From NCBI RefSeq assembly GCF_000006765.1, contig NC_002516.2: DNA of 64,000 nt; one strand, written 5' to 3'. Shown here one piece after another: positions 6,992-20,943 of this stretch; position 1 is the first letter of the stretch; the number at the start of each line of letters is the position of its first letter. Origin of the DNA: Pseudomonas aeruginosa PAO1. GTDB lineage: Bacteria > Pseudomonadota > Gammaproteobacteria > Pseudomonadales > Pseudomonadaceae. Position numbers and translations under genes: made by a program. The notes under the pieces were generated by a model, which worked only from the letters and a program-made list of their open reading frames with translations, was not told the DNA's origin and made no database searches.

Positions 6992-7398
6992 GGAAGCGGG
7001 CCTTTTATCTGATGCTACGCTCGGCGACGCTCTTCCTAGGAATACGACGTTCCAGAGGTCATGCCGGATAGCGTGTTGTTCTGATTATCGCGCTCCAATC
7101 TGTGCCAAGAATGCGCCGATTTCAACCGCTTATTCGTGACCGGTAGGTTCTCATTCGAACGGCATGACGTTTTCTCCGTCAGCCTTCACGTTTTTGCGAA
7201 AGGTATGTTTAGAATGCCTCTCGATTTCGTGCTTGACTGCCTCCTGTTCTATTGATCGAACAGGTCGCGGTCGCGATAACAGAACAAGAACACGATGGGT
7301 CGACCAGTCCGCCGGGAAGGCTTCCGGACAACGAAGCAGCGCCTGGCCTCGCTCATCACCACCAAGCTGTCGAACGGGCAGTTTCATCACGAGATGCC

Positions 7399-9027
7399 AT
7401 GAATTTCATCCTTTACTCGGATATCAACGAGCGCTCGATCGGCCACAACCTCGGTCGCCCCGAATACAGCTACTACTTCGTCCTCAAGGCCTACCGGCCA
7501 ATCCTCGAATCGCTGGGACAGGTCCACCTGGTACAGAGCACGGACGAAGTCGACCCGCTCTACCGGCAACTGCATGAACAGGGCGAAGACTGCCTGTTCC
7601 TCTCCTTCACCCCGCCGCACAAGGCGGCGCGGGGCCTGCAATGCCCGATGCTGTGCGTGGTCGCCTGGGAGTTCGAGACGATTCCCGACGTGGCGTGGGA
7701 CGGCGATCCGGCGCAGGACTGGAGCCAGGTCCTGGCCGGCCATGGCGCAGCCATCACCCTCTCCGAGCAGACTGCCCGCGCGGTTCGCCGGGTGCTGGGC
7801 GAAGATTTTCCGGTACTGGCGCTGCCGACGCCGATCTGGGAGGACTTCGCCGCGATCCGCCAGCAAGGCGAACGGAATCCGGTCAAGTCCGGCGAGACCC
7901 TGCAACTCAAGGGCTGCGTCATCGACAGCCGCCTGCTGGGCCTTTCCGCCGACGGCCTCATCGCACCGATCAGGGAAGAGACCGAGGACGAGATCCTCGA
8001 GGTCCTCCCCGAGACGCCCGCCGAGCCCGAGCCCGAACCGGTCCCTGAGCCAGAACCAGAGCCAGAGCCGGTTCCTCTCGACTGGAGGCGCCGACTGGTC
8101 ATCAGCAAGCACTACCTGCTGCTGTGGTACCGGGAAGCCGTCAGCGACCTGGTACCCATACCGGTACGCCGCTGGCTGTTCCGTCACCTGCGCCGGCCGC
8201 TGCCGCCCCCGCCAACGGCGCTGGAAACGCTGCCGGAGCCATTGCCCCAGGCCATCGAGCCGATGCCGCCCGCCGAGCCCGAGCATCCGCCGGCGCTGTT
8301 GCCGGCCGTCGACCAGCACCAGCAGGTCGTCGTGGACGGGGTGGTCTACGTCTCGGTGTTCAATCCGCTGGACGGGCGCAAGAACTGGCATCAGCTGATC
8401 ACCGCCTTCTGCTGGGCATTCCGCGACACCAGCGATGCCACGCTGGTGCTGAAGATGACCCAGAGCGACCTGACGACCTACCACGTCGAACTGCTCACCC
8501 TGCTTTCCCAACTGTCGCCATTCGCCTGCCGGGTCATCGCCCTGCACGGCTATCTCGATGCCGCGGAGTACGCCCGCCTGTACGGAGCCGCCAGCTACTA
8601 CGTGAACGCCTCGCGCTGCGAGGGCCTGTGCCTGCCGCTGATGGAATTCATGTCCTGCGGCACCCCGGCGATCGCTCCGGACCATTCGGCGATGGCCGAC
8701 TACATGGACGCCCAGGTGGGCTTCGTGGTCCGCTCCAGCCAGGAGCCCGCGGCCTGGCCGCAGGATTCGCGCCGGTTGTACAGCACCCGGCGCTACCGGC
8801 CGAGCTGGGAGTCCCTGAAGGAGGCCTACCTGGAGAGCTACCGGGTAGCCCGGGAACAGCCGGAGCGCTATCGGCAACTGTCCGCCGCGGCCAACCAACG
8901 CATGCGCGGCTACTGCGCCGGCGACGTGGTCCGCCAGCGCCTGGAACCCTTCCTTTCCGCCCGCAAGGCAACCCCTGCGCCCGGCGTCGAACTGGCGGCC
9001 ACCGCCACAGGCAACGTTCCATGCTGA
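7399..9027 (+). CDS. Glycosyltransferase (GT4-like), CPA modification cluster (PA5455-like)
   Basis: Start MNFILYSD chosen by alignment with the paralog downstream. Motif SRCEGLCLPLMEFMSCG. Confidence 0.85.
   Translation: MNFILYSDINERSIGHNLGRPEYSYYFVLKAYRPILESLGQVHLVQSTDEVDPLYRQLHEQGEDCLFLSFTPPHKAARGLQCPMLCVVAWEFETIPDVAWDGDPAQDWSQVLAGHGAAITLSEQTARAVRRVLGEDFPVLALPTPIWEDFAAIRQQGERNPVKSGETLQLKGCVIDSRLLGLSADGLIAPIREETEDEILEVLPETPAEPEPEPVPEPEPEPEPVPLDWRRRLVISKHYLLLWYREAVSDLVPIPVRRWLFRHLRRPLPPPPTALETLPEPLPQAIEPMPPAEPEHPPALLPAVDQHQQVVVDGVVYVSVFNPLDGRKNWHQLITAFCWAFRDTSDATLVLKMTQSDLTTYHVELLTLLSQLSPFACRVIALHGYLDAAEYARLYGAASYYVNASRCEGLCLPLMEFMSCGTPAIAPDHSAMADYMDAQVGFVVRSSQEPAAWPQDSRRLYSTRRYRPSWESLKEAYLESYRVAREQPERYRQLSAAANQRMRGYCAGDVVRQRLEPFLSARKATPAPGVELAATATGNVPC
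8021..8074 (+). repeat. Pro-Glu low-complexity coding repeat (AEPEPEPVPEPEPEPEPV)
   Basis: Degenerate 6-bp units GAGCCC/GAACCG/GAGCCA read directly in the sequence. Confidence 0.8.
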
Positions 9028-10322
9028 TCATCATCCACTCCGAGACCAACAAGACCACCATCCGGCAGAACCTCGGGCGCCCGGAGTACAGCTATTACTT
9101 CGTCCTCAAGGAATTCCGTCCGCTGCTGGAAGAGATCGGCCAGGTGGTCGAAGTCAGCGATCCCGACGAACTGGTGGACCGCCTCTACCACGACTGCCGC
9201 AAGCGCGGCGAACCCTGTGTCTTCCTCTCCTTCTCGCCGCCCCATCGCACGCCGATCCACCATGCCTGCCCGACCATCCCGGTGTTCGCCTGGGAGTTCA
9301 GCACCCTCCCCAGCGAAACCTGGCACGGCGAACCGCGCCACGACTGGCGACATGTGCTGCGCCACAGCGGACGGGCCATCACCCACTCCAGCTTCACGGT
9401 CGACGTGGTGCGCGCCGCCATGGGTCGCGACTACCCGGTACTGAGCGTGCCGGCGCCGGTCTGGGATCGCTTCGCCAACCGCGCCTCGCAGCAGGCGGGC
9501 CGTCCCGAAGCCCGGGATGTGCGCCTGCGCCTGGACGGCCTGCTGGTGGACAGCCGCCAGCTGGACCTGGCCGTCCATGCCGACCCCGAGCCGTCGGCGG
9601 AGGTCCTGGCCCTGCCGGACCGCGCGGCGAAACAGGTCGAGCTGAGCCTCGACGGGGTCATCTACACCTCGGTGTTCAACCCCTACGACGGGCGCAAGAA
9701 CTGGCAGGACATGATCAGCGCGTTCTGCGCCACCTTCCGCGACGAGCCCGACGCCACCCTGGTGCTGAAACTGACCCACCACAACGTCGGCGAAGCGCTG
9801 GCCGACATGCTTCACCACCTGTACAAGAACCAGTCCTACCGCTGCCGCATCGTGCTGATCCACGGCTACCTCGCCGACCCGGACTACGAGCGGCTGGTCG
9901 AGGCCACCAGCTACGTGGTGAACACCTCCTACGGCGAAGGCCAATGCCTGCCGCTGATGGAATTCATGTCCAGCGGCAAGCCGGCCGTGGCTCCGCGCAA
10001 TACCGCGATGATCGACTACATCGACGCCGACAACGCCTTCATCGTCGACTCCTCGGAAGAAGCCACCGCCTGGCCCCACGACCCGCGCGCGGCCTACCGC
10101 ACGCTGCGCTACATCACCGACTGGGAGTCGCTGTGCCGGGCCTACCGGGCCAGTTTCGAGGTCGCTCGCCAGGAGCCGGAGCGCTACGCACGCATGTCCG
10201 CGCATGCCAGCGCCAGCCTCGAACGCTTCTGCAGCCGCAAGCTGGCCGTGGAGCGCCTGCGTCGCTTCTTCGACGAAGCGGCACAAGGCGACCCCTCCGC
10301 CTTGCAAAGCATCCCGGCATGA
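9021..10322 (+). CDS. Glycosyltransferase (GT4-like), paralog of the upstream gene (PA5456-like)
   Basis: MLIIIHSET start. Shares LGRPEYSYYFVLK, SVFNPxDGRKNW and EGxCLPLMEFMS with 7399-9027. Confidence 0.87.
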   Translation: MLIIIHSETNKTTIRQNLGRPEYSYYFVLKEFRPLLEEIGQVVEVSDPDELVDRLYHDCRKRGEPCVFLSFSPPHRTPIHHACPTIPVFAWEFSTLPSETWHGEPRHDWRHVLRHSGRAITHSSFTVDVVRAAMGRDYPVLSVPAPVWDRFANRASQQAGRPEARDVRLRLDGLLVDSRQLDLAVHADPEPSAEVLALPDRAAKQVELSLDGVIYTSVFNPYDGRKNWQDMISAFCATFRDEPDATLVLKLTHHNVGEALADMLHHLYKNQSYRCRIVLIHGYLADPDYERLVEATSYVVNTSYGEGQCLPLMEFMSSGKPAVAPRNTAMIDYIDADNAFIVDSSEEATAWPHDPRAAYRTLRYITDWESLCRAYRASFEVARQEPERYARMSAHASASLERFCSRKLAVERLRRFFDEAAQGDPSALQSIPA

Positions 10323-11182
10323 TCCGCGCCCTGCTCCAACGCTGGCGTTCCCGTCCCGCTGCGGCGAGCGAACCGGTGTCGCCACGCATGTGCGGTCTGC
10401 GCGATGCGGTGCTGGATGGCTGGTTCCGCAGCGAAACCGGCGAACTGCTCGCCGGCTTCGCCATCGGCGCCCAGGACACCCTGCTCGATCTCGGCTGCGG
10501 CGAAGGCGTCGCCACCCTCTTCGCCGCCCGCCAGGGCGCTTCGGTGATCTTCACCGACAGCGAGGAGGACAAGGTGCGGAGCCTGGCGCAGCAGGTCGAG
10601 GCGGTGGCCCGGCGGCCCTTCACCGGCCTGGTCAGCGACAGCGACCCGCTGCCGCTGCGCGACGCCTGCGCCGACAAGCTGGTGTGCATGGAAGTGCTCG
10701 AACACGTGGCCAACCCAGCGCGGGTGATGGCCGAACTCGTGCGTCTCGGCCGCCCTGGCGCGCAGTACCTGCTGAGCGTGCCGGACCCGGTCGGCGAACA
10801 CCTGCAGCAGGGCATCGCCCCGGCCGACTACTTCCGGGCGCCCAACCACATCCACATCTTTTCCCGTGACGACTTCGCGCGCTTGGTGCAGGACGCCGGG
10901 CTGGTCATCGAGCACCGCCAGGCCAGCGGCTTCTTCTGGGTGATGGGCATGATCTTCTTCTGGGCCAGCGAAAGGGCCGCCGGCCGTGAGCTCGGCGGCG
11001 CCGTCCGCGACCGTATCCAGCCGCCCTACCCGGCGCTGATGGAAGACTGGGCACGGCTCTGGGAAAACCTCCTGGCCCGTCCCGACGGCCTGGAGATCAA
11101 GCACCTGCTCGACCATTTCATGCCCAAGAGCCAGGTGATCATCGCGCGCAAGCCGCTCGACCCCGGATCGTCGCGGACATGA
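10319..11182 (+). CDS. SAM-dependent methyltransferase (PA5457-like)
   Basis: Motif I LLDLGCGEG and CMEVLEHV; ATGA overlap with the upstream gene. Confidence 0.88.
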   Translation: MIRALLQRWRSRPAAASEPVSPRMCGLRDAVLDGWFRSETGELLAGFAIGAQDTLLDLGCGEGVATLFAARQGASVIFTDSEEDKVRSLAQQVEAVARRPFTGLVSDSDPLPLRDACADKLVCMEVLEHVANPARVMAELVRLGRPGAQYLLSVPDPVGEHLQQGIAPADYFRAPNHIHIFSRDDFARLVQDAGLVIEHRQASGFFWVMGMIFFWASERAAGRELGGAVRDRIQPPYPALMEDWARLWENLLARPDGLEIKHLLDHFMPKSQVIIARKPLDPGSSRT

Positions 11183-12321
11183 GCGGCAAACGCATCCTCG
11201 ACATCGAACTGTTGCGCGGGCTGGCCGTGCTCGGCGTGGTATTCCACCATCTGCACGGCAACCTGTTCAGCGGCTCCCCGGCACTGCTGGACGGCATCAA
11301 CCAGCGCGTCCAGTTCTGGTGGGGCGTGGACCTGTTCTTCGCCATCTCCGGCTTCGTCATCGCCCGCACCCTCATCCCGCAACTGCGCGAGGCGCCCACA
11401 CGCCAGGCATTCTGGGAACAGGCGCGGTACTTCTGGATTCGCCGCGCCTTCCGCCTGCTGCCCTCGGCCTGGCTGTGGCTGGCGCTGATCCTGGCCTGTT
11501 GCCTGCTGCTGAACCGCTCCGGAGCCTTCGGCAGCCTGTCGGCCAACCTCGCGGCGAGCCTCGCCGGTTTCCTCCAGGTCGCCAACTTCCGCTTCGCCGA
11601 CAGTTTCTACCGCTACGAATACGGTGCCAGCTTCGTCTACTGGAGCCTTTCCCTGGAGGAACAGTTCTACCTCCTGCTGCCGCTGCTGATCCTCTGCCTG
11701 CGTCGCTACCTGGGCTGGGCCCTCCTGGCGCTGGTGCTGGTCCAGTTCTTCAGCCTGCGCACGCCGCTGCTGATGGTATTGCGCACCGACGCCCTGGCCA
11801 TCGGCGTACTGCTCGCCCTCGCCTCCCTGCAGCCTGGCTATGCCCGCTGGAACCCCACCCTGCTGGGCCGCGCCTGGAGCGGGCCGTTGCTGCTGGCCGC
11901 CGTGGCCGCGGCCCTGGGCGTGCTGGCCAGCGAAGCGTACAGCCTGGTCGCCGTGCGGATCGGCGCCATCGCGCTATTGTGCGGACTGCTGGTGTGGATA
12001 GCCTCCTACGACCGCGACTACCTGCTCTCCAACGGGCCGCTGAAGCGCTTGCTGGTCTGGGTCGGCGCGCGCTCCTATGCGATCTACCTGATCCACATCC
12101 CGGCGTTCTATCTCAGTCGCGAACTCTGCTTCCGCCTGGGCTGGGACGCCGGCGAGCGGCCCCTGTCGCTGCTCGGCACCAGCCTGGTCCTGATCGTCGT
12201 ACTCAGCGAGCTCAACTACCGCTTCGTCGAGAGCCCCTGCCGCGACCTGGGCTCCCGCCTGGTCAAGCGCCTGAGCGCCGCCCGCCGCGTCGCCACCACT
12301 TCCGGAGCCACCTCATGCTGA
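11179..12321 (+). CDS. OafA-like membrane acyltransferase (Acyl_transf_3)
   Basis: IELLRGLAVLGVV, GVDLFFAISGFVI, WSLSLEEQFY and SYAIYLIH motifs; multi-TM. Confidence 0.9.
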   Translation: MSGKRILDIELLRGLAVLGVVFHHLHGNLFSGSPALLDGINQRVQFWWGVDLFFAISGFVIARTLIPQLREAPTRQAFWEQARYFWIRRAFRLLPSAWLWLALILACCLLLNRSGAFGSLSANLAASLAGFLQVANFRFADSFYRYEYGASFVYWSLSLEEQFYLLLPLLILCLRRYLGWALLALVLVQFFSLRTPLLMVLRTDALAIGVLLALASLQPGYARWNPTLLGRAWSGPLLLAAVAAALGVLASEAYSLVAVRIGAIALLCGLLVWIASYDRDYLLSNGPLKRLLVWVGARSYAIYLIHIPAFYLSRELCFRLGWDAGERPLSLLGTSLVLIVVLSELNYRFVESPCRDLGSRLVKRLSAARRVATTSGATSC

Positions 12322-13151
12322 ACTTCCTCAAGAAGATCGTCTCGCCGCCCAGCCCCGCCACCGAGCCCGTCGCCGCGCCACCCGCCCCCGCGCCGGTCGA
12401 CCCGTACATGCTCGGGTTGCGCGACGCGGTGCTCAGCGGCTGGTTCAACCAGGAGACCGACGAGCTGTTCAGCGGCTTTCCGATTTCCGCCGAGGACACC
12501 GTGCTCGACGTGGGGTGCGGCGACGGCGGCAACGTTCATTTCTGCGCCATGCGCGGCGCTCGCATCATCATCGCCGACATCGACGCGGAAAAGATCGCCA
12601 GGACCCGCGAGCGCCTGGCCGATACCCCGGCCCGCGAACTGGAATGCCTGGTCAGCGACTGCGACCCGCTGCCCCTGGCTGACGCCACGGCCACCCGGGT
12701 GGTCTCCACCGAGGTCATCGAGCACGTCGACGATCCGCGGCAGTTCCTCGCCGAGCTGGTGCGGGTCGGCCAGCCCGGCGCACTCTATCTGCTCAGCGTG
12801 CCGCATCCCACGTCGGAAGACCTGCAGAAAGACTTCGCCGCCGACGAATACTTCCGCAAACCCAACCACATCCGCGTGCTCGGCGAGGAGCAGTTCGCCG
12901 CACTGGTGCGCGAAGCCGGGCTGGAAATCCTCAGCCACAGCCGCTACGGCTTCTACTGGTCGCTGTGGATGCTGCTGTTCTGGGAGGCCAAGGTCGATTT
13001 CGGCAATCCCGACCATCCCCTCCTCGAACACTGGGCCAGGACCTGGCAGGCGCTGCTCGACTCGCCGCGCGGCCCGGCCATCAAGCAGGCCCTGGACGCC
13101 GTGGTCGCCAAGAGCCAGGTGATCATCGCGCGCAAGCCCGCCCAGGCGTAG
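12315..13151 (+). CDS. SAM-dependent methyltransferase (PA5459-like), paralog of 10319-11182
   Basis: VLDVGCGDG, STEVIEHV; shares GLRDAVLxGWF and KSQVIIARKP with its paralog. Confidence 0.88.
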   Translation: MLNFLKKIVSPPSPATEPVAAPPAPAPVDPYMLGLRDAVLSGWFNQETDELFSGFPISAEDTVLDVGCGDGGNVHFCAMRGARIIIADIDAEKIARTRERLADTPARELECLVSDCDPLPLADATATRVVSTEVIEHVDDPRQFLAELVRVGQPGALYLLSVPHPTSEDLQKDFAADEYFRKPNHIRVLGEEQFAALVREAGLEILSHSRYGFYWSLWMLLFWEAKVDFGNPDHPLLEHWARTWQALLDSPRGPAIKQALDAVVAKSQVIIARKPAQA

Positions 13152-13313: not shown

Positions 13314-13526
13314 ATGAGGACATCCCCGCACCCGCACGCCGGGAGCTCCAGCGGTCTCCCGGCTGCCCATCCACATCTCGCCGCCCTGCTGGAAAAATTG
13401 AATTCCTGGCGACAAAACGCTCGATCGCGCAAGCATCTTGCGCAAATGTCCGAACACGACCTCGCCGACCTGGCGATCAGCCCGAGCGAACGCTACGTAG
13501 AGATTTCGAAACCTTTCTGGCGCTGA
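13314..13526 (+). CDS. DUF1127 (YjiS-like) small protein, 70 aa
   Basis: AAGGA RBS; family hallmark W-R-x4-RSRKHLAQMSEHDLADLAI...KPFWR. Confidence 0.85.
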   Translation: MRTSPHPHAGSSSGLPAAHPHLAALLEKLNSWRQNARSRKHLAQMSEHDLADLAISPSERYVEISKPFWR

Positions 13527-13621
13527 GCCGCTGGTGACGTGGCGCACAGTTGGTTAGTCTCAGCGTTGACACGGCCGCGCGGATGCGGCCGTCTACGCTG
13601 ACTTCGTTCGGAGCAACTCAC

Positions 13622-13939
13622 ATGAAACGTCTGCGCCTGATCGGTGCCGCTGCCCTGCTCGCCTGCGCCTCCAGCGCGTTCGCCAGCAGCTTCGTGGTCA
13701 CCACGGATACCCTGGTCCGCGCCACCGGCATGACCTCCAATGCCACTTCGGACATCACCAATTCCTTCCGCGACGACAAGATCGTCCTCGAAGCGCGCGA
13801 CGACGCCGCCAGCTTCGTCGCCAGCCAGGGCGACATCCGCGGTTCGCACCTGGAAGCCGCACTGCGCCACATCCGTGGCAAGCTGCCGAGCCTGGCCGCC
13901 AACGACATGCAACTGGCCCAGGCGATCCTGACCATCTGA
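13622..13939 (+). CDS. Secreted DUF2388-family protein (copy 1)
   Basis: Signal peptide ending AFA; motif ARDDAASFVASQGDIRGSHLEAAL. Confidence 0.85.
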   Translation: MKRLRLIGAAALLACASSAFASSFVVTTDTLVRATGMTSNATSDITNSFRDDKIVLEARDDAASFVASQGDIRGSHLEAALRHIRGKLPSLAANDMQLAQAILTI

Positions 13940-14063
13940 GTCGCCCGCCCCGCCGCCGCAGCCGCCCGGCTGCGGCGATGACCTGGCCGACCGGCCACAC
14001 TGGCTCCGCGCCGCACATTCCGTTAGCCTTGACGGCTGTTCCAGTCCTATTCCGCCCAACCCC

Positions 14064-14357
14064 ATGCGTTACCGGTTCTCGTTGCTCTTCTGTTGCCTGC
14101 TGGCGCCCGCTGCGCACGCCTTCGATACCACGACGGCGTTCACCGCGAAGTCCCTTTACGTCACCAGCAAGCTGACCAGCACGCCGTTCGAGAACAAATT
14201 GTTACGCGATGCCCGGGGCGATGCGGCCAGCTTCGTCGCCAGCGATGGCAGCATCCGTGGTGCGCGCCTGGAAGCGGCGCTGCGCTGGTTGCGTGTCGCG
14301 CACCCCGAGCTGGCGGCCAGCGATCAGGAACTGGCCGAAGCAATTCTTGCCCAATAG
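14064..14357 (+). CDS. Secreted DUF2388-family protein (copy 2)
   Basis: Signal peptide ending AHA; motif ARGDAASFVASDGSIRGARLEAAL. Confidence 0.85.
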   Translation: MRYRFSLLFCCLLAPAAHAFDTTTAFTAKSLYVTSKLTSTPFENKLLRDARGDAASFVASDGSIRGARLEAALRWLRVAHPELAASDQELAEAILAQ

Positions 14358-14385
14358 GCGATCACCACCGTTCCGGAGAACCTCC

Positions 14386-14721
14386 ATGCGCCGTAGCTCC
14401 ATGCGTCATAGCCCCCTGTTCGCCGCCCTGCTGCTGGCGCTCTGCGCCACGGCCGCGGAAGCACGCTCGGTGGTCGCGACCAGCAATATCATCGTCCGCG
14501 CCCTCGACCGCAGCATCGACTTCACTTCCGACACCACCACTTCCGTGCGCGACATGAAAGTGGTCACCGAGGCGCGCGACGACGCCGCCAGTTTCGTCGC
14601 CAGCGACGGCGCCATTCGCGGCGCCCAGCTGGAAGCCGCGATGCGGACCCTGCGCAGCCGTCTGCCGGAAGCCCGGGAAGCCTCCGACCAGGTACTTGCC
14701 GAAGCCATTCTCGCCCTGTGA
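14386..14721 (+). CDS. Secreted DUF2388-family protein (copy 3)
   Basis: GGAGA RBS; signal peptide ending AEA; motif ARDDAASFVASDGAIRGAQLEAAM. Alternative start at 14401. Confidence 0.85.
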   Translation: MRRSSMRHSPLFAALLLALCATAAEARSVVATSNIIVRALDRSIDFTSDTTTSVRDMKVVTEARDDAASFVASDGAIRGAQLEAAMRTLRSRLPEAREASDQVLAEAILAL

Positions 14722-16676
14722 GGAAGGCCTGCGCCTGGCTGCTGGCGCTGGCCCTCTGCGGAGCCGGCAACGCGACGGCGGCCCTGCGCCTGAAACTCGA
14801 CGCGCCTGGGCTGGACCCTGCGCAGCGCGAGGCCAGCCAGCAACTCTTGGACGAAGCCGCGGACAAGTTGCCGCCGGCCTTCCGCGAACGCCTGGACCGC
14901 GAGATCGAGGTCGAGTGGCGCGACGACCTGCCCGCCAACGGCATGGGCCAGGCCCGTGGCCCGCAGCGCATCGCGCTGAACCGCAAGTACCTGGCCGATC
15001 TCACCGACGGCAGCGCCGCCAGCCGCCAGACCGGGCGCGTGCACGGCACCGAGCGGCGCGAGCTGCTGGCGACCCTGCTGCACGAGCTGACCCACGTCTA
15101 CGATCGCGCGCGCCTGTGGTCGGCGGAGGAAAAACGCGAGATCCGCCGCTGCACGCGCCAGGAAGAAACCCTCGGCCGGATCGCCCAGCCCACCGATTGC
15201 CGCGGGCAGAGCGGTCGCCGCTTCACGCTCTCCGACGACCCGCGCCTGCTCGATCTCGCCGGCTGGCCGCAGCGCACCGGCCAGCGCGGGCGGCGCGAGG
15301 CGCACAATGGCTTCGTACTGCGCAGCCCGGACGTCTACGAGCTGAGCAATCCGCGCGAGTTCGTCGCGGTGAACATGGAGTACTTCCTCCTCGATCCCAG
15401 CTACGCCTGCCGCCGCCCGGCGCTCTACCGCTACTACCAGCAACGCTTCGGCTGGGCGCCGGAACACAGTGCCTGTGCGCAGAGCTTCGCCTACCTCAAC
15501 GCCGGCCGCGACTTCGGCCAGCAGCCGCTGGGCCAGCTCGACCCCGAGCGGGTCTACGAGGTCGACTACCTGCTGGCCGAGGCCAACGACAACCTGGTCA
15601 GCCGCTGGGGCCACACCATGCTCCGCCTGGTGATCTGCGCCCCCGGCCGGCCGCGTGGGCCGGACTGCCGGCTGGACCTCGACCAGCATCTGGTGCTGTC
15701 CTACCGCGCCTTCGTCGGCGACCTGCAATTGTCCAGCTGGGACGGCCTGACCGGCGCCTATCCGTCGCGCCTGTTCGTCCTGCCGCTGTCGCAGGTGATC
15801 GAGGAATACACCAAGGTCGAGCTGCGCAGCCTCGCCTCGGTGCCGCTGAAGCTGGACCGCGAGGAGGTCGCCAGCCTGGTCGAGCGCGCCGCGCAGAGTC
15901 ACTGGAGCTACGACGGTCAGTACTACTTCATCTCCAACAATTGCGCGGTGGAAACCCTCAAGCTGCTGCGCAGCGGCATCCCCCGGCGACCGCTGCAAAG
16001 CCTGGACAGCATCACCCCCTACGGCGTGCTCGAGATGCTGGAGAACCGCAAGCTGGCCGATCCCAGTGTGCTCGACGACCCCAAGGAAGCCCTGCGCCTG
16101 GGCTACCGCTTCGACTCCTTCCGCGACCGCTACCAGGCGATGTTCGACGTGCTCAAGCAGCGCCTGCACATTCCCCAGGACAAGGTCGAGGACTGGCTGG
16201 CGCTGCCGGCCAGGGAGCGCCAGCCCTGGTTCGCCAAGGCCGACCTGCGCGCCAGCGCGGCGCTGCTGCTGCTCGAGCAGGCCTCGCTGCGGCGCCAGCT
16301 GCTGCTCGCCCAGGACGAGTTGAAGCGCCTGTACCTCGGCCATCTGGACAAGCCGGCCGGCGACCAGCGCCTGGAAGTGGCCGGCAAGACCTTCCAGCAG
16401 ATCCTCGACGACAGCGGCTTCCTCAGTCGTCCGGCGGAACTCCTGGAGGGCGGCTACGGCCTGCCGCAGGCCGCCGAGTGGAAGCACCTGGAAGAGCAGA
16501 CCCGCGAACGCCAGGCGCGCCTGCGCCGGCTCAGCGACGACCTCGACCGCGAGGTCCGCGCCCTGCTCGATCCCGAGCGCCGCGCCGAGCTGGAAGCCAA
16601 CGAGGCCAACATCAAGGAGGTCGGCGCGCACCTGCGCGAGCTGCACAAGGCGGCCGGCGGGCTGATGCTGCCCTGA
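14718..16676 (+). CDS. Exported DUF4105 (Lnb_N-like) domain protein with N-terminal HExxH zincin-like domain, 652 aa
   Basis: GTGA overlap with DUF2388 copy 3; signal peptide; HELTH, WGHTMLR and YYFISNNCAVE motifs. Confidence 0.8.
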   Translation: MRKACAWLLALALCGAGNATAALRLKLDAPGLDPAQREASQQLLDEAADKLPPAFRERLDREIEVEWRDDLPANGMGQARGPQRIALNRKYLADLTDGSAASRQTGRVHGTERRELLATLLHELTHVYDRARLWSAEEKREIRRCTRQEETLGRIAQPTDCRGQSGRRFTLSDDPRLLDLAGWPQRTGQRGRREAHNGFVLRSPDVYELSNPREFVAVNMEYFLLDPSYACRRPALYRYYQQRFGWAPEHSACAQSFAYLNAGRDFGQQPLGQLDPERVYEVDYLLAEANDNLVSRWGHTMLRLVICAPGRPRGPDCRLDLDQHLVLSYRAFVGDLQLSSWDGLTGAYPSRLFVLPLSQVIEEYTKVELRSLASVPLKLDREEVASLVERAAQSHWSYDGQYYFISNNCAVETLKLLRSGIPRRPLQSLDSITPYGVLEMLENRKLADPSVLDDPKEALRLGYRFDSFRDRYQAMFDVLKQRLHIPQDKVEDWLALPARERQPWFAKADLRASAALLLLEQASLRRQLLLAQDELKRLYLGHLDKPAGDQRLEVAGKTFQQILDDSGFLSRPAELLEGGYGLPQAAEWKHLEEQTRERQARLRRLSDDLDREVRALLDPERRAELEANEANIKEVGAHLRELHKAAGGLMLP

Positions 16677-16730
16677 GGGAGGCGCCTGCAGGACGCATGG
16701 TCCCGAGCGCTCTTCCAGCGCCTCGCAGAC

Positions 16731-16761
16731 GGCGGATAACGCTCTGCGTTATTCGCCCTAC
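16731..16761 (-). repeat. GTAG-type REP palindrome
   Basis: Minus strand GTAG-GGCGAATAACGC-AGA-GCGTTATCCGCC, between convergent genes. Confidence 0.75.
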
Positions 16762-16783
16762 AGGTGCCACCTCCGGTCTTCGC

Positions 16784-17203
16784 TCACGGGTCGTCCGCTC
16801 CGGCGATGAACTCCTCGTCCTCTTCGGGCAACTGCGGGTCGAGGTGTAGCCATGGCAGGCGGCTGCCGACCCAGATGTGCCGGTTGGCGGGGGCGCGCTC
16901 GGGATGGTCGAGGCTGGCCACGGTGAAGTCCAGGGTATCGGCGCTGAGCCGGGTGAACAACGCCAGGTTGGCCCCGCAACGCGGACAGAAGTAGCGCGTG
17001 CAGCTGGCCGACGAGGCATATTCCGCCGGTTCGCCCGCCAGCCAGCGGAACGCCGCGCGCGGCACCGTGGCCCAGGTGGTGACGATGCCGCCTGTGGTGC
17101 GCCGGCAGATCGAGCAGTGGCAGTGAGCGACATCGTCCAGCGGCGCGGCGACGGCGTAGCGCAGATAGCCGCAATGGCAACCGCCGGTATGGGTCTCGGG
17201 CAT
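16784..17203 (-). CDS. GFA/CENP-V family zinc-binding protein
   Basis: GGCHCG...HCHCSICRR...YFCPRCG cysteine pattern. Confidence 0.88.
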   Translation of the reverse strand: MPETHTGGCHCGYLRYAVAAPLDDVAHCHCSICRRTTGGIVTTWATVPRAAFRWLAGEPAEYASSASCTRYFCPRCGANLALFTRLSADTLDFTVASLDHPERAPANRHIWVGSRLPWLHLDPQLPEEDEEFIAGADDP

Positions 17204-17270
17204 GGCGAATCCTCCTCGCGGGAGTGCCAGCATAAGCCGGACTTGCCCTGTGCCGCAGCCACCTCGCAAG

Positions 17271-18215
17271 ATGAGCGGATTCCACTATCCGGGGGTGCCC
17301 GTGACCGCTCTGCTCTACTCCCTCTGGCCGCTGTTCGCCCTCATCGTCGGCGGTTACGCCCTGCGCCGCTGGGACTTTCCCGGCGAAGCCTTCTGGCCTG
17401 CCGCAGAACGCCTGAACTACTTCATCCTGTTTCCCGCGCTGCTGTTCAGCAACCTGGCGACCGCGCCGCTGGACGACCCCGGCCTGGCCCGCCAGGCCCT
17501 GGCCGTACTGCTCGGGCTCGGCGTCGCCTGGCTCGCCCTGCTGCTCTGCAAGCGCTGGCGCGGCTGGGACGCCGGGCGCTTCGGCGCCATCGCCCAGGGC
17601 GTATTGCGCTTCAACACCTATCTCGGCCTGGCCGCGGTCGGCAGCCTGTACGGCAAGCCGGGCCTGACCCTGGCCGCGCTGATGCTGGCGCTGATGGTGC
17701 CGACGGTGAACGTGATGTCGGTCTGGGCGCTGACCGCCGAGCGCGGCATCAGCCTGCGCGCGCTGCTGCTGCCGATCCTGAAGAACCCGCTGATCCTCGC
17801 CTGCCTCGCCGGCGCACTGGTCAACCTGGCCGGCGTCGGCCTGCCCGGCGGCAGCGATCGCCTGCTCAACCTGCTGGCGGTGGCCAGCCTGCCGCTGGGC
17901 CTGCTGTGCGTCGGCGCGGCGCTGAAACCCCAGGAACTCGGCGGCGAAGTCGCGGCCCTTGGCTGGAACTGCGCGGCGCGGCTGCTGGCGATGCCCCTGC
18001 TGGCCTTCGCCATCGCTCGCGGGCTGGGCCTGCCGAGCATGGAAAGCGCCGTGCTGGTACTGTTCTTCGCCCTGCCGACGGCGCCCACCGCCTATGTGCT
18101 GACCCGCCAACTGGGCGGCGACGGCCACCTGATGGCGGGCATCATTACCTTGCAAACGCTGCTTTCCGGCGCCACTCTGGTCGGCGTACTCCTCGTGCTG
18201 CAAGGAAGCCCATGA
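17271..18215 (+). CDS. AEC (auxin efflux carrier) family transporter
   Basis: About 10 TM segments; LNYFILFPALLF, KNPLILA, LPTAPTAY. Start may be the GTG at 17301. Confidence 0.85.
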   Translation: MSGFHYPGVPVTALLYSLWPLFALIVGGYALRRWDFPGEAFWPAAERLNYFILFPALLFSNLATAPLDDPGLARQALAVLLGLGVAWLALLLCKRWRGWDAGRFGAIAQGVLRFNTYLGLAAVGSLYGKPGLTLAALMLALMVPTVNVMSVWALTAERGISLRALLLPILKNPLILACLAGALVNLAGVGLPGGSDRLLNLLAVASLPLGLLCVGAALKPQELGGEVAALGWNCAARLLAMPLLAFAIARGLGLPSMESAVLVLFFALPTAPTAYVLTRQLGGDGHLMAGIITLQTLLSGATLVGVLLVLQGSP

Positions 18216-18574
18216 CGACAGGACGCGTCGCCGCCGCCCTCACGGCGCTCTGCCTGCTCTGCCAACCGGCCTTCGGTTTCATCAAGGTGTTTCCCGAATT
18301 CGACGACGAACCCGGCGCCGCCACCTTCTTCTGGGCGGCCGTCACCACCGTCGGCCCGTTCATCGGCAGCACCGTCAGCGCACAGGAGTCCAGCGCTGAC
18401 GAGGGCGACAAGCTCGTCCAGGCGCGGGACGACGCCGCCAGCTTCGTCGCCAGCGACGGTGCGATCCGTGGCGCGTACCTCCAGGCAGCCTTGCAGGTCC
18501 TGCGCCAGGCCCCGGAATACGCCGGGTACAGCGACCTGCAACTGGCCGCGGCGCTCCTCGCGCGGCAGCCCTGA
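18212..18574 (+). CDS. Secreted DUF2388-family protein (copy 4)
   Basis: ATGA overlap with the AEC gene; motif ARDDAASFVASDGAIRGAYLQAAL. Confidence 0.85.
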   Translation: MTTGRVAAALTALCLLCQPAFGFIKVFPEFDDEPGAATFFWAAVTTVGPFIGSTVSAQESSADEGDKLVQARDDAASFVASDGAIRGAYLQAALQVLRQAPEYAGYSDLQLAAALLARQP

Positions 18575-18853: not shown

Positions 18854-20158
18854 ATGCTGACCCTGCTCGCCTTCGCCATGGTGGCGACCTTCATGTTCCT
18901 GATCATGACCAAGCGCCTGTCCGCGCTGATCGCGCTGATCCTGGTCCCGATCGCCTTCGCCCTGATCGGCGGTTTCGCCGCCGGCCTCGGCCCGATGATG
19001 CTCGACGGCATCCGCACCCTGGCGCCGACCGGCGTGATGCTGATGTTCGCGATCCTCTACTTCGCCATCATGATCGACTCCGGGCTGTTCGACCCGGCGG
19101 TGCGCAAGATCCTCCGGCTGGTCAAGGGCGACCCGCTGAAGGTCTCGCTGGGCACCGCGGCGCTGGCGATGATCGTCTCCCTCGACGGCGACGGCTCGAC
19201 CACCTACATGATCTGCGTGGCCGCCGTACTGCCGTTGTACAGCCGCCTGGGCATGAGCCCGCTGGTGATGGCCTGCCTGATCATGCTCTCCAGCGGCGTG
19301 CTCAACATGACCCCCTGGGGTGGCCCCACCGCCCGCGCGGCGAGTGCCCTGCACGTCGACCCGGCGGATATCTTCGTGCCGATGATCCCGGCGATGATCG
19401 CCGGGCTGCTGGCGATCTTCGCCATCGCCTGGATCTACGGCAAGCGCGAGCGCGCCCGCCTCGGCGAGCTGCACCTGCCCACCGACCATGAGGACCTGGC
19501 GGAGATCAGCGTGTCGCAGTATCCGGAGGCGCGCCGGCCCAAGCTGCTGTGGTTCAACGCTATTCTCACCGTGGTCCTGATGGCGACCCTGATCGCCGGC
19601 CTGCTGCCGATGCCGGTGCTGTTCATGATCGCCTTCGGCATCGCCATGATCGTCAACTACCCGTGCATCCAGGAGCAGAAGAAGCGCATCGGCGCACACG
19701 CCGAGAACATTCTCGCAGTGGTCTCGCTGATCTTCGCCGCCGGGGTGTTCACCGGCATCCTCTCCGGCACCGGGATGGTCGACGCCATGTCCAAGAGCCT
19801 GCTGGCGGTGATCCCGCCGGCGCTGGGCCCATACCTGGCGACCATCACCGCGCTGGTGAGCATGCCGTTCACCTTCTTCATGTCCAACGACGCCTTCTAC
19901 TACGGCGTCCTGCCGATCCTCACCCAGGCCGCCGCCGAATACGGCATCACCCCGGTGGAAATGGCCCGCGCCTCGATCGTCGGCCAGCCGGTGCACCTGC
20001 TCAGCCCGCTGGTGCCCTCCACCTACCTGCTGGTGGGGCTGGCCAAGATCGACTTCGGCGACCACCAGCGCTTCACCCTGAAATGGGCCGTGCTGGTGTG
20101 CCTGGCAATCCTCGCCATGGCCCTGCTGCTGGGCCTGTTCCCCCTGTTCAGTAACTGA
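18854..20158 (+). CDS. CitMHS family citrate/metal-citrate:H+ symporter
   Basis: DSGLFDP, LDGDGSTTY, NMTPWGGPTARAA, SNDAFYYGVLP motifs. Confidence 0.9.
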   Translation: MLTLLAFAMVATFMFLIMTKRLSALIALILVPIAFALIGGFAAGLGPMMLDGIRTLAPTGVMLMFAILYFAIMIDSGLFDPAVRKILRLVKGDPLKVSLGTAALAMIVSLDGDGSTTYMICVAAVLPLYSRLGMSPLVMACLIMLSSGVLNMTPWGGPTARAASALHVDPADIFVPMIPAMIAGLLAIFAIAWIYGKRERARLGELHLPTDHEDLAEISVSQYPEARRPKLLWFNAILTVVLMATLIAGLLPMPVLFMIAFGIAMIVNYPCIQEQKKRIGAHAENILAVVSLIFAAGVFTGILSGTGMVDAMSKSLLAVIPPALGPYLATITALVSMPFTFFMSNDAFYYGVLPILTQAAAEYGITPVEMARASIVGQPVHLLSPLVPSTYLLVGLAKIDFGDHQRFTLKWAVLVCLAILAMALLLGLFPLFSN

Positions 20159-20178: not shown

Positions 20179-20943
20179 ATGGAATGGCTGACCAGCCCGG
20201 AAATCTGGATTGCGTTCTTCACCCTGACCGCCCTGGAGATCGTCCTCGGCATCGACAACATCATCATGATCTCGATCCTGGTCGGGCGCATGCCGAAGCA
20301 CCTGCAGCCACGCACCCGCTTCTTCGGCCTGGCCCTGGCGATGGTGACGCGGATCCTGCTGTTGCTGTCGATCACCTGGGTCATGCGCCTGACCGCCGAC
20401 CTCTTCCACCTGTTCGGCCAGGGCATCTCCGGACGCGACCTGATCCTGTTCTTCGGCGGCCTGTTCCTGCTCTGGAAAAGCAGCTCGGAGATCTACCAGG
20501 GCCTGGAAGGCGAGGAAGAAAGCGGCGATGAACCGAAGGGGTCGGCGGGCGGCTTCATCGGCACCATCATCCAGATCGCGATCATCGACATCGTCTTTTC
20601 CCTGGACTCGGTGATCACCGCCGTCGGCATGGTCTCCCACGTGCCGGTGATGGTCGCGGCGATCATCGTCGCGGTACTGGTGATGATGCTCTGCGCCGGC
20701 GCCATCAGCGACTTCATCGACAAGCACCCGTCGCTGAAGATGCTCGCCCTGTCGTTCCTCATCGTGGTCGGCACGGTGCTGATCGCCGAAGCCTTCGAAG
20801 TCCATGTGCCGAAGGGCTACGTCTACTTCGCCATGGCCTTCTCCCTGGCCGTGGAGGCGCTGAACATCCGCATGCGCGGCGCTGCCGCGCGCAAGCGGGG
20901 CGAAGAGCCAGTGAAGCTGCGCAAGGAAGTGCTCGGCGACTGA
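20179..20943 (+). CDS. TerC family membrane protein
   Basis: LEIVLGIDNI, DIVFSLDSVITAVG, HPSLKMLALSFL. Confidence 0.92.
   Translation: MEWLTSPEIWIAFFTLTALEIVLGIDNIIMISILVGRMPKHLQPRTRFFGLALAMVTRILLLLSITWVMRLTADLFHLFGQGISGRDLILFFGGLFLLWKSSSEIYQGLEGEEESGDEPKGSAGGFIGTIIQIAIIDIVFSLDSVITAVGMVSHVPVMVAAIIVAVLVMMLCAGAISDFIDKHPSLKMLALSFLIVVGTVLIAEAFEVHVPKGYVYFAMAFSLAVEALNIRMRGAAARKRGEEPVKLRKEVLGD

Follow-up and report, generated by a model that had tools for sequence, protein, structure and literature searches.

Peptidases related to anthrax lethal factor (LF) have been described in several settings. LF itself comes with toxin-delivery domains, MtfA (peptidase family M90) is a cytoplasmic protein, and the Pro-Pro endopeptidases (PPEPs) are secreted LF-like enzymes whose neighbouring genes encode small secreted or surface proteins that are possible substrates. 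The Lnb_N or DUF4105 domain comes from a different context, the lipoprotein N-acyltransferase Lnb of Bacteroides, in which it is combined with five transmembrane helices (PMC11573676). Soluble permuted NlpC/P60 enzymes, namely Tox-Act1, TseH and YiiX, are toxins delivered by the type VI secretion system or single-domain proteins (PMC12994826). Here we analysed a stretch of 64,000 nucleotides from Pseudomonas aeruginosa PAO1 (contig NC_002516.2, hereafter the window), and in particular the gene at 14718-16676 (+), whose product carries a DUF7844 domain followed by an Lnb_N/DUF4105 domain and is preceded by small genes of the DUF2388 family. Both enzyme domains are catalogued in Pfam and their superfamilies are known. 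In the literature that was searched, DUF7844 occurred in no paper and DUF2388 occurred only in expression tables. Neither DUF7844 as an LF/MtfA-like gluzincin nor a soluble fusion of a peptidase with an acyltransferase is described there, and the same is true of the near-obligate pairing and the predicted complex with DUF2388 that are reported below.

We put forward, at a chance that we place a little short of even, the explanation that this protein is a soluble periplasmic combination of two enzymes with DUF2388 proteins as its clients. The exported fusion, together with its DUF2388 partner, suggests that the cell envelope has a step of protein processing or lipid transfer that has not been described. 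The enzyme gene was found in all 11 Pseudomonadaceae genomes sampled, including that of an important opportunistic pathogen, and is widespread in the predatory Bdellovibrionota.

Domain architecture and export of the enzyme

The enzyme gene is a 652-codon open frame at 14718-16676 (+), stop codon included, and it begins with GTG. This start shares the sequence GTGA with the TGA stop codon of the preceding DUF2388 gene. Judging from gene order, the product is probably PA5463 of P. aeruginosa. In Pfam the protein of 652 residues is laid out as DUF7844, then Lnb_N/DUF4105, then a C-terminal region of 210 residues to which no family is assigned. Its parts are located as follows.

14718-14780, + strand: signal peptide, residues 1-21, from hydrophobicity in 19-residue windows (KD-19) and an A-T-A cleavage motif; cleavage site judged by eye
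14787-15473, + strand: DUF7844 domain, residues 24-252, from Pfam and structural comparison
15081-15095, + strand: HELTH motif, residues 122-126 (H122, E123, H126), from conservation; helix in the model
15336-15359, + strand: segment from Y207 to E214, from conservation and alignment to MtfA
15528-16043, + strand: Lnb_N/DUF4105 domain, residues 271-442, from Pfam and the model
15612-15614, + strand: His299, putative general base, from conservation and the model
15942-15944, + strand: Cys409, putative acyl-accepting nucleophile directly after N408, from conservation and the model
16044-16673, + strand: C-terminal helical region, residues 443-652, no Pfam family; predicted docking surface for DUF2388

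A word-index search returned 3341 relatives, and the best 120 of these were all Pseudomonas proteins of about 650 residues with both Pfam domains. In a full HMMER search, 591 cluster representatives matched the N-terminal domain alone at E <= 0.001, and because most of them are 600-730 residues long, the two-domain architecture can be considered the rule in the DUF7844 family. Conservation was evaluated in an alignment of the protein with 99 full-length representatives (n = 100; 25-58% identity; mean column identity 23%), to which the percentages for single residues below refer.

The DUF7844 profile (PF25226) matched residues 24-252 with 378.1 bits (E 1.9e-113; profile positions 1-229 of 230), where the cut-off is 27 bits. 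The first-pass annotation, made from the sequence of the window, had noticed HELTH at 15081-15095 followed by a Tyr-Glu stretch, and had likened them to the zinc peptidases of the MtfA and LF types. The positions were exact, the downstream stretch being Y207-E214, and the likeness was borne out by profile, hhalign and fold matches to these types. The family profile reached the MtfA structures 9srw (E 0.0018), 3dl1 and 3khi, and aligned its HExxH helix and Tyr...Glu segment to MtfA in the correct order, with HELTH placed onto HEVAH. Comparison by hhalign with an MtfA from the genome of an enteric bacterium gave a probability of 95.2% (E 2.7e-8; 36% identity over 73 columns). The spacing of Y207 and E214, in which Tyr stands seven residues ahead of Glu, equals that of Y205 and E212 in MtfA. 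The DUF7844 profile also reached MtfA-sized frames in enterobacterial genomes, under its own cut-off. The NCBIfam MtfA equivalog scored 11.7 bits against a cut-off of 400, with MtfA and HtpX matches at noise level, and no match was obtained when the full-length sequence was searched directly against the PDB.

Conservation of the candidate peptidase residues was 100% for H122, 98% for E123, 98% for H126, 93% for Y207 and 100% for E214. In an AlphaFold2 (AF2) model of residues 22-262, with a predicted local distance difference test score (pLDDT) of 94.8 and a predicted template-modelling score (pTM) of 0.92, H122 and H126 lie in one helix (model residues 91-109) and E214 lies in a later helix, which is the arrangement of a gluzincin. 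A wide structural search (VIA-align) showed that the model resembles solved members of the LF, MtfA and PPEP types. Foldseek against the PDB returned nothing at E <= 0.001 for either domain model, and its top-ranked families for the N-terminal domain were the same as those of the wide search, with weak scores. We place DUF7844 among the LF-like gluzincins as a sister family to M90, and set it outside M90 proper because the M90 threshold was not reached. The N-terminal domain would thus be a gluzincin of the LF, MtfA (M90) or PPEP type. In such an enzyme the zinc would be bound by H122, H126 and E214, with E123 serving as the base and Y207 stabilising the transition state.

Some features set the protein apart from these peptidases. 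While MtfA is cytoplasmic, the enzyme described here is exported, has conserved Cys pairs and stays under the M90 cut-off. Compared with the MtfA/LF/M34 group, it adds an insert of about 35 residues and a second enzyme domain, and the toxin-delivery domains of LF are absent from it. The insert (residues 134-168, ~15117-15221) is bracketed by C145/C161, lies between the HExxH and Glu helices, and is missing from about 9% of the aligned family, including the Xanthomonadales homologs (loci L014-L017).

The second domain was matched by the Lnb_N/DUF4105 profile (PF13387) at residues 271-442 with 97 bits (E 1.3e-27; cut-off 22.2 bits). The suggestion that the His at 15612 and the Cys at 15942 fit a permuted NlpC/P60 fold held, with exact positions, the match above the cut-off, and a domain model that resembles TseH and YiiX in fold and has TseH as its top structural match. 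H299 (99%), N408 (100%) and C409 (99%) were conserved. His299 opens a beta-strand (model residues 37-44) and Cys409 opens a helix (147-158), a permuted order that is as expected for this fold. Conservation in orthologs, which had been named beforehand as a test, was 93-100% for the motif residues of both domains. The Cys-His domain would load C409, activated by H299, with a fatty acyl chain drawn from a phospholipid, and the chain would then be passed to an acceptor or to water, as in Lnb, Tox-Act1, TseH and LRAT.

The protein is like Lnb in its above-threshold Lnb_N domain, in the order of His and then Cys, and in having TseH as the top structural match. It is unlike Lnb in that it has no transmembrane helices, a soluble helical tail in their place and an added N-terminal domain of zinc-peptidase type. 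In contrast to Tox-Act1, TseH and YiiX, it is Sec-exported and encoded in the core genome, and it has a fused peptidase-type domain and a dedicated small partner. From the conserved residues of both centres we infer zinc binding and both activities, and it is very probable that the protein contains two functional catalytic domains of different chemistry.

Another DUF4105 protein was observed in the nearest genome (G001), where a frame of 621 residues (L002:1138-3000) lies about 1 Mb from the locus. Its architecture is DUF7843 - Lnb_N - DUF7840, the Lnb_N profile fits it better than the enzyme studied here (206 vs 97 bits), and its aromatic-rich C-terminus resembles an outer-membrane beta-barrel signature.

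From about residue 470 onwards, the enzyme consists of long charged helical hairpins with generic structural matches only. This tail carries E520, Y580, G581 and P583, which are invariant or near-invariant in the same alignment. All hydrophobic 19-residue windows fall at the N-terminus, within the signal peptide, and therefore there is no transmembrane bundle like that of Lnb. The first-pass annotation had already reported the bundle as missing and had proposed a soluble exported protein, in agreement with the signal peptide and the lack of any other hydrophobic segment. Signals of the signal peptidase I (SPase-I) type are general in the family, the motif here being A-T-A. A lipoprotein identity was also considered and was rejected, since there is no lipobox in this protein and a lipobox-like motif in only one of 100 homologs. 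The Cys pairs C145/C161, C231/C253 and C307/C317 are conserved in at least 90%, which fits an oxidising compartment. Read from its sequence, the enzyme is a soluble, Sec-exported periplasmic protein without a membrane anchor.

DUF2388 genes and the predicted complex

The window contains four DUF2388 genes, three of them in tandem upstream of the enzyme gene.

13622-13939, + strand: DUF2388 gene 1, 105 residues, small secreted protein (PF09498, E 1.9e-32)
14064-14357, + strand: DUF2388 gene 2, 97 residues (PF09498, E 1e-31)
14386-14721, + strand: DUF2388 gene 3, 111 residues, predicted binding partner, with the GTGA overlap (PF09498, E 1.6e-31)
18200-18574, + strand: fourth DUF2388 gene, domain at ~18374-18571 (Pfam, E 1.1e-20), more divergent than the tandem three

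The tandem copies scored 108.6-111.6 bits. A DUF2388 protein is made up of a signal peptide, a Ser/Thr-rich N-terminal segment and a conserved, helical domain about 65 residues long, and its N-terminal tail (residues 27-52) is conserved inside orthologous groups. The family profile found no relative among solved structures.

In order to describe the linkage of the two families, DUF7844 and DUF2388 were scored by Pfam cut-offs in 401 sampled genomes of the phylum. DUF7844 was above its cut-off in 15 genomes, namely all 11 sampled from the family to which the window belongs and all 4 from a second gammaproteobacterial family, and DUF2388 was above its cut-off in the same 15, with the genes adjacent. 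Each of these genomes had one enzyme gene and 3-7 DUF2388 copies, several of which were unlinked to the enzyme gene. In addition, 80 loci from species genomes were compared. Fifty were gammaproteobacterial (Pseudomonas, Halopseudomonas, Thiopseudomonas, Luteimonas, Lysobacter, Cognatilysobacter and Denitratimonas) and 30 came from Bdellovibrionota (Bdellovibrio, Bacteriovoracaceae and Oligoflexia). A DUF2388 gene was located immediately upstream of the enzyme gene, on the same strand, in 49 of the gammaproteobacterial loci (49/50), and adjoined it in 11 of the 30 Bdellovibrionota loci.

Bdellovibrionota loci that were negative for DUF2388 often had adjoining small secreted proteins of similar size. 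These were tried as remote homologs, which gave one weak Pfam match (E 0.02) and hhalign values of 0.1-62%, and homology was not demonstrated. Some DUF2388-like neighbours in Bdellovibrionota (L080:5947-6354, L082:5919-6305, L095:3264-3713 and L094:3330-3785) had His/Gly-rich or Cys/His-rich N-terminal segments, with HHGGG runs or CxxxC plus an HHH run. By their composition, these segments look like metal-binding tails beside a zinc-peptidase gene. In one Bdellovibrio clade, the third gene downstream of the enzyme gene, on the same strand, encoded a protein with PG_binding_1 and a weak YkuD match (L,D-transpeptidase-like; L080:8718-9926, with equivalents in L082, L083 and L086).

A complex was predicted for the mature enzyme (residues 22-652) and the mature protein from DUF2388 gene 3 (residues 27-111), the gene whose stop codon overlaps the enzyme start. 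The interface score ipSAE was 0.84 (0.85, 0.83 and 0.84 in the separate runs), compared to 0.00-0.01 for three controls. In the calibration of this score, 58 of 80 solved complexes and 2 of 110 mismatched pairs attained the pass mark, and the calibration holds here only roughly because our own unpaired alignments were used. At least 72% of contacts were common to the runs, and the pLDDT of the partner was at least 73. About 190 contacts make up the predicted interface, about 100 of them confident. The confident contacts connect DUF2388 residues 53-111 with residues 319-322, 358-366, 456-478, 510-521 and 639-652 of the enzyme, that is, with the helical tail and with a loop of the NlpC/P60 domain, the part at 319-322 holding the conserved D320. 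The DUF2388 tail (residues 27-52) is outside the confident interface and was not placed, and neither H299 nor C409 takes part in a confident contact. Going by this model, the enzyme probably associates physically with DUF2388.

Candidate roles of the enzyme and its DUF2388 partner

In the explanation that we favour, the helical tail and the NlpC/P60 loop would dock the folded C-terminal domain of DUF2388 while its Ser/Thr-rich tail stays free to be shortened by the peptidase and/or to receive an acyl chain from the Cys-His domain. That DUF2388 is a substrate, or client, whose tail is cut and/or acylated is something we infer tentatively and with rather less than an even chance. We prefer this model because there are many DUF2388 copies for one enzyme, because the DUF2388 tail is conserved yet free in the complex, because relatives of the Cys-His domain move acyl chains of phospholipids, and because enzymes that are fused usually share one common substrate. 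The arrangement recalls the PPEPs and the possible substrates encoded beside them, although DUF2388 has no evident Pro-Pro site and the enzyme here additionally has another catalytic domain and a tail for docking. If the client model is true, it would mean a new post-export protein modification in Gram-negative envelopes and would give functions to three domains of unknown function together. A further-reaching version, which we consider improbable, is a route of lipidation or maturation independent of Lgt, Lsp and Lnt in Pseudomonas, some Xanthomonadales and many Bdellovibrionota, in which DUF2388 would be docked, trimmed and acylated. After trimming, a phospholipid-derived acyl chain would be attached either at the newly exposed amino group or at a Ser/Thr hydroxyl, and such a route, if true, would yield a new class of acylated small envelope proteins.

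Several observations weigh against the client explanation as a whole, in addition to the rough calibration of the complex score. A large confident interface and translational coupling would suit a stable subunit or an inhibitor at least equally well. One Pseudomonas locus (L063), the sole gammaproteobacterial exception, has no upstream DUF2388 gene, and 19 of the 30 Bdellovibrionota loci have no demonstrable DUF2388 homolog. Residues on the enzyme side of the interface do not exceed the remainder of the tail in conservation (permutation p 0.63), a lack of special conservation that by itself neither supports nor refutes the complex model. As for the domains, the Peptidase_M90 profile (PF06167) stayed under its gathering cut-off of 26.2 bits (14.6 bits, E 0.025, residues 205-244), and the third residue of the Cys-His triad has several candidates, namely H324 (91%), D320 (94%) and the acidic position 316 (77% D/E). 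This residue is Glu81 in TseH. In Lnb it is Asn66 (PMC11573676).

The points about interface and coupling belong to a different view of DUF2388, as a stoichiometric regulatory, inhibitory or chaperone subunit that restrains or directs a potentially membrane-damaging periplasmic peptidase/phospholipase, the true targets being other envelope molecules, for example phospholipids, lipoproteins or peptide stems. The shared GTGA at stop and start suggests that synthesis is coupled, the interface is large and confident and touches the D320-bearing loop 319-322, and soluble relatives of the domain are periplasm-acting toxins that require immunity proteins (PMC12994826). However, a subunit of this kind does not sit easily with 3-7 DUF2388 copies per genome of which several are unlinked to the enzyme gene, with the position of H299 and C409 outside the confident contacts, or with a conserved N-terminal tail that has no part in docking, and we consider this view somewhat unlikely. 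It is also conceivable that the protein is a general envelope enzyme for lipids or lipoproteins, a phospholipase A or acyltransferase joined to a peptidase that remodels N-termini, with DUF2388 linked to it by regulation or pathway and without contact. The literature connects the DUF4105 clade with lipoprotein N-acylation and with contexts of lipid metabolism (PMC11573676, PMC12994826), and both the ordinary conservation of the interface residues and the many Bdellovibrionota loci without demonstrable DUF2388 would be in line with this. Against it, the complex model passed where the controls gave 0.00-0.01, and the co-occurrence is exact in 401 genomes, with adjacency in two distant gammaproteobacterial families, and we regard this explanation as quite improbable.

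Two other explanations appear very unlikely. One or both domains could be catalytically dead binding modules (pseudoenzymes), as MtfA titrates Mlc according to the title of PDB entry 9srw and MtfA-type peptidases can be mainly binders; yet the metal-binding and catalytic positions in both centres show 93-100% conservation where overall identity is about 30%, which is a pattern unusual for pseudoenzymes. The other explanation is that the protein supports or substitutes for Lnt as a second lipoprotein N-acyltransferase of the Lnb-like kind. The Lnb_N match above threshold and the conserved His and Cys would agree with it, but there is no transmembrane bundle or membrane anchor of any kind, P. 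aeruginosa owns a canonical and well-studied Lnt (PMC11573676), and the fused peptidase and the link with DUF2388 would be left unexplained.

Genomic surroundings, expression and overlapping frames

Upstream of the DUF2388 genes, at 7252-13151 (+), the order of genes is glycosyltransferase, glycosyltransferase, methyltransferase, Acyl_transf_3 and methyltransferase, which is the order of the common-polysaccharide-antigen operon pa5455-pa5459 of P. aeruginosa, and pa5460 is not co-transcribed with that operon (PMC3560663). By this gene order, the tandem DUF2388 genes are probably pa5460-pa5462. Literature traces of these genes are expression lists (PMC4412052, PMC2998477). The fourth DUF2388 gene follows a Mem_trans/auxin-efflux-carrier-like gene (17202-18215) and precedes the genes for CitMHS (18854-20158) and TerC (20179-20943).

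RNA sequencing (RNA-seq) contigs from four libraries of different studies cover 13500-16700, and three of the libraries span the whole region. The contig of library X20 breaks within the enzyme gene, at ~14981-15009, and the mean depth was 212 on the contig of the DUF2388 side compared to 33 on the contig with the rest of the enzyme gene. These depths are averages over contigs, and they hint at stronger expression of the DUF2388 genes than of the enzyme. Since contigs cannot prove transcription or an operon, we count them only as consistent with expression.

Two other long open frames overlap the enzyme gene. An antisense frame of 746 residues at 14406-16646 (-) covers nearly all of it, and a further frame is found at 14696-16849 (+). 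Because the sequence is GC-rich, both were taken as artefacts of composition.

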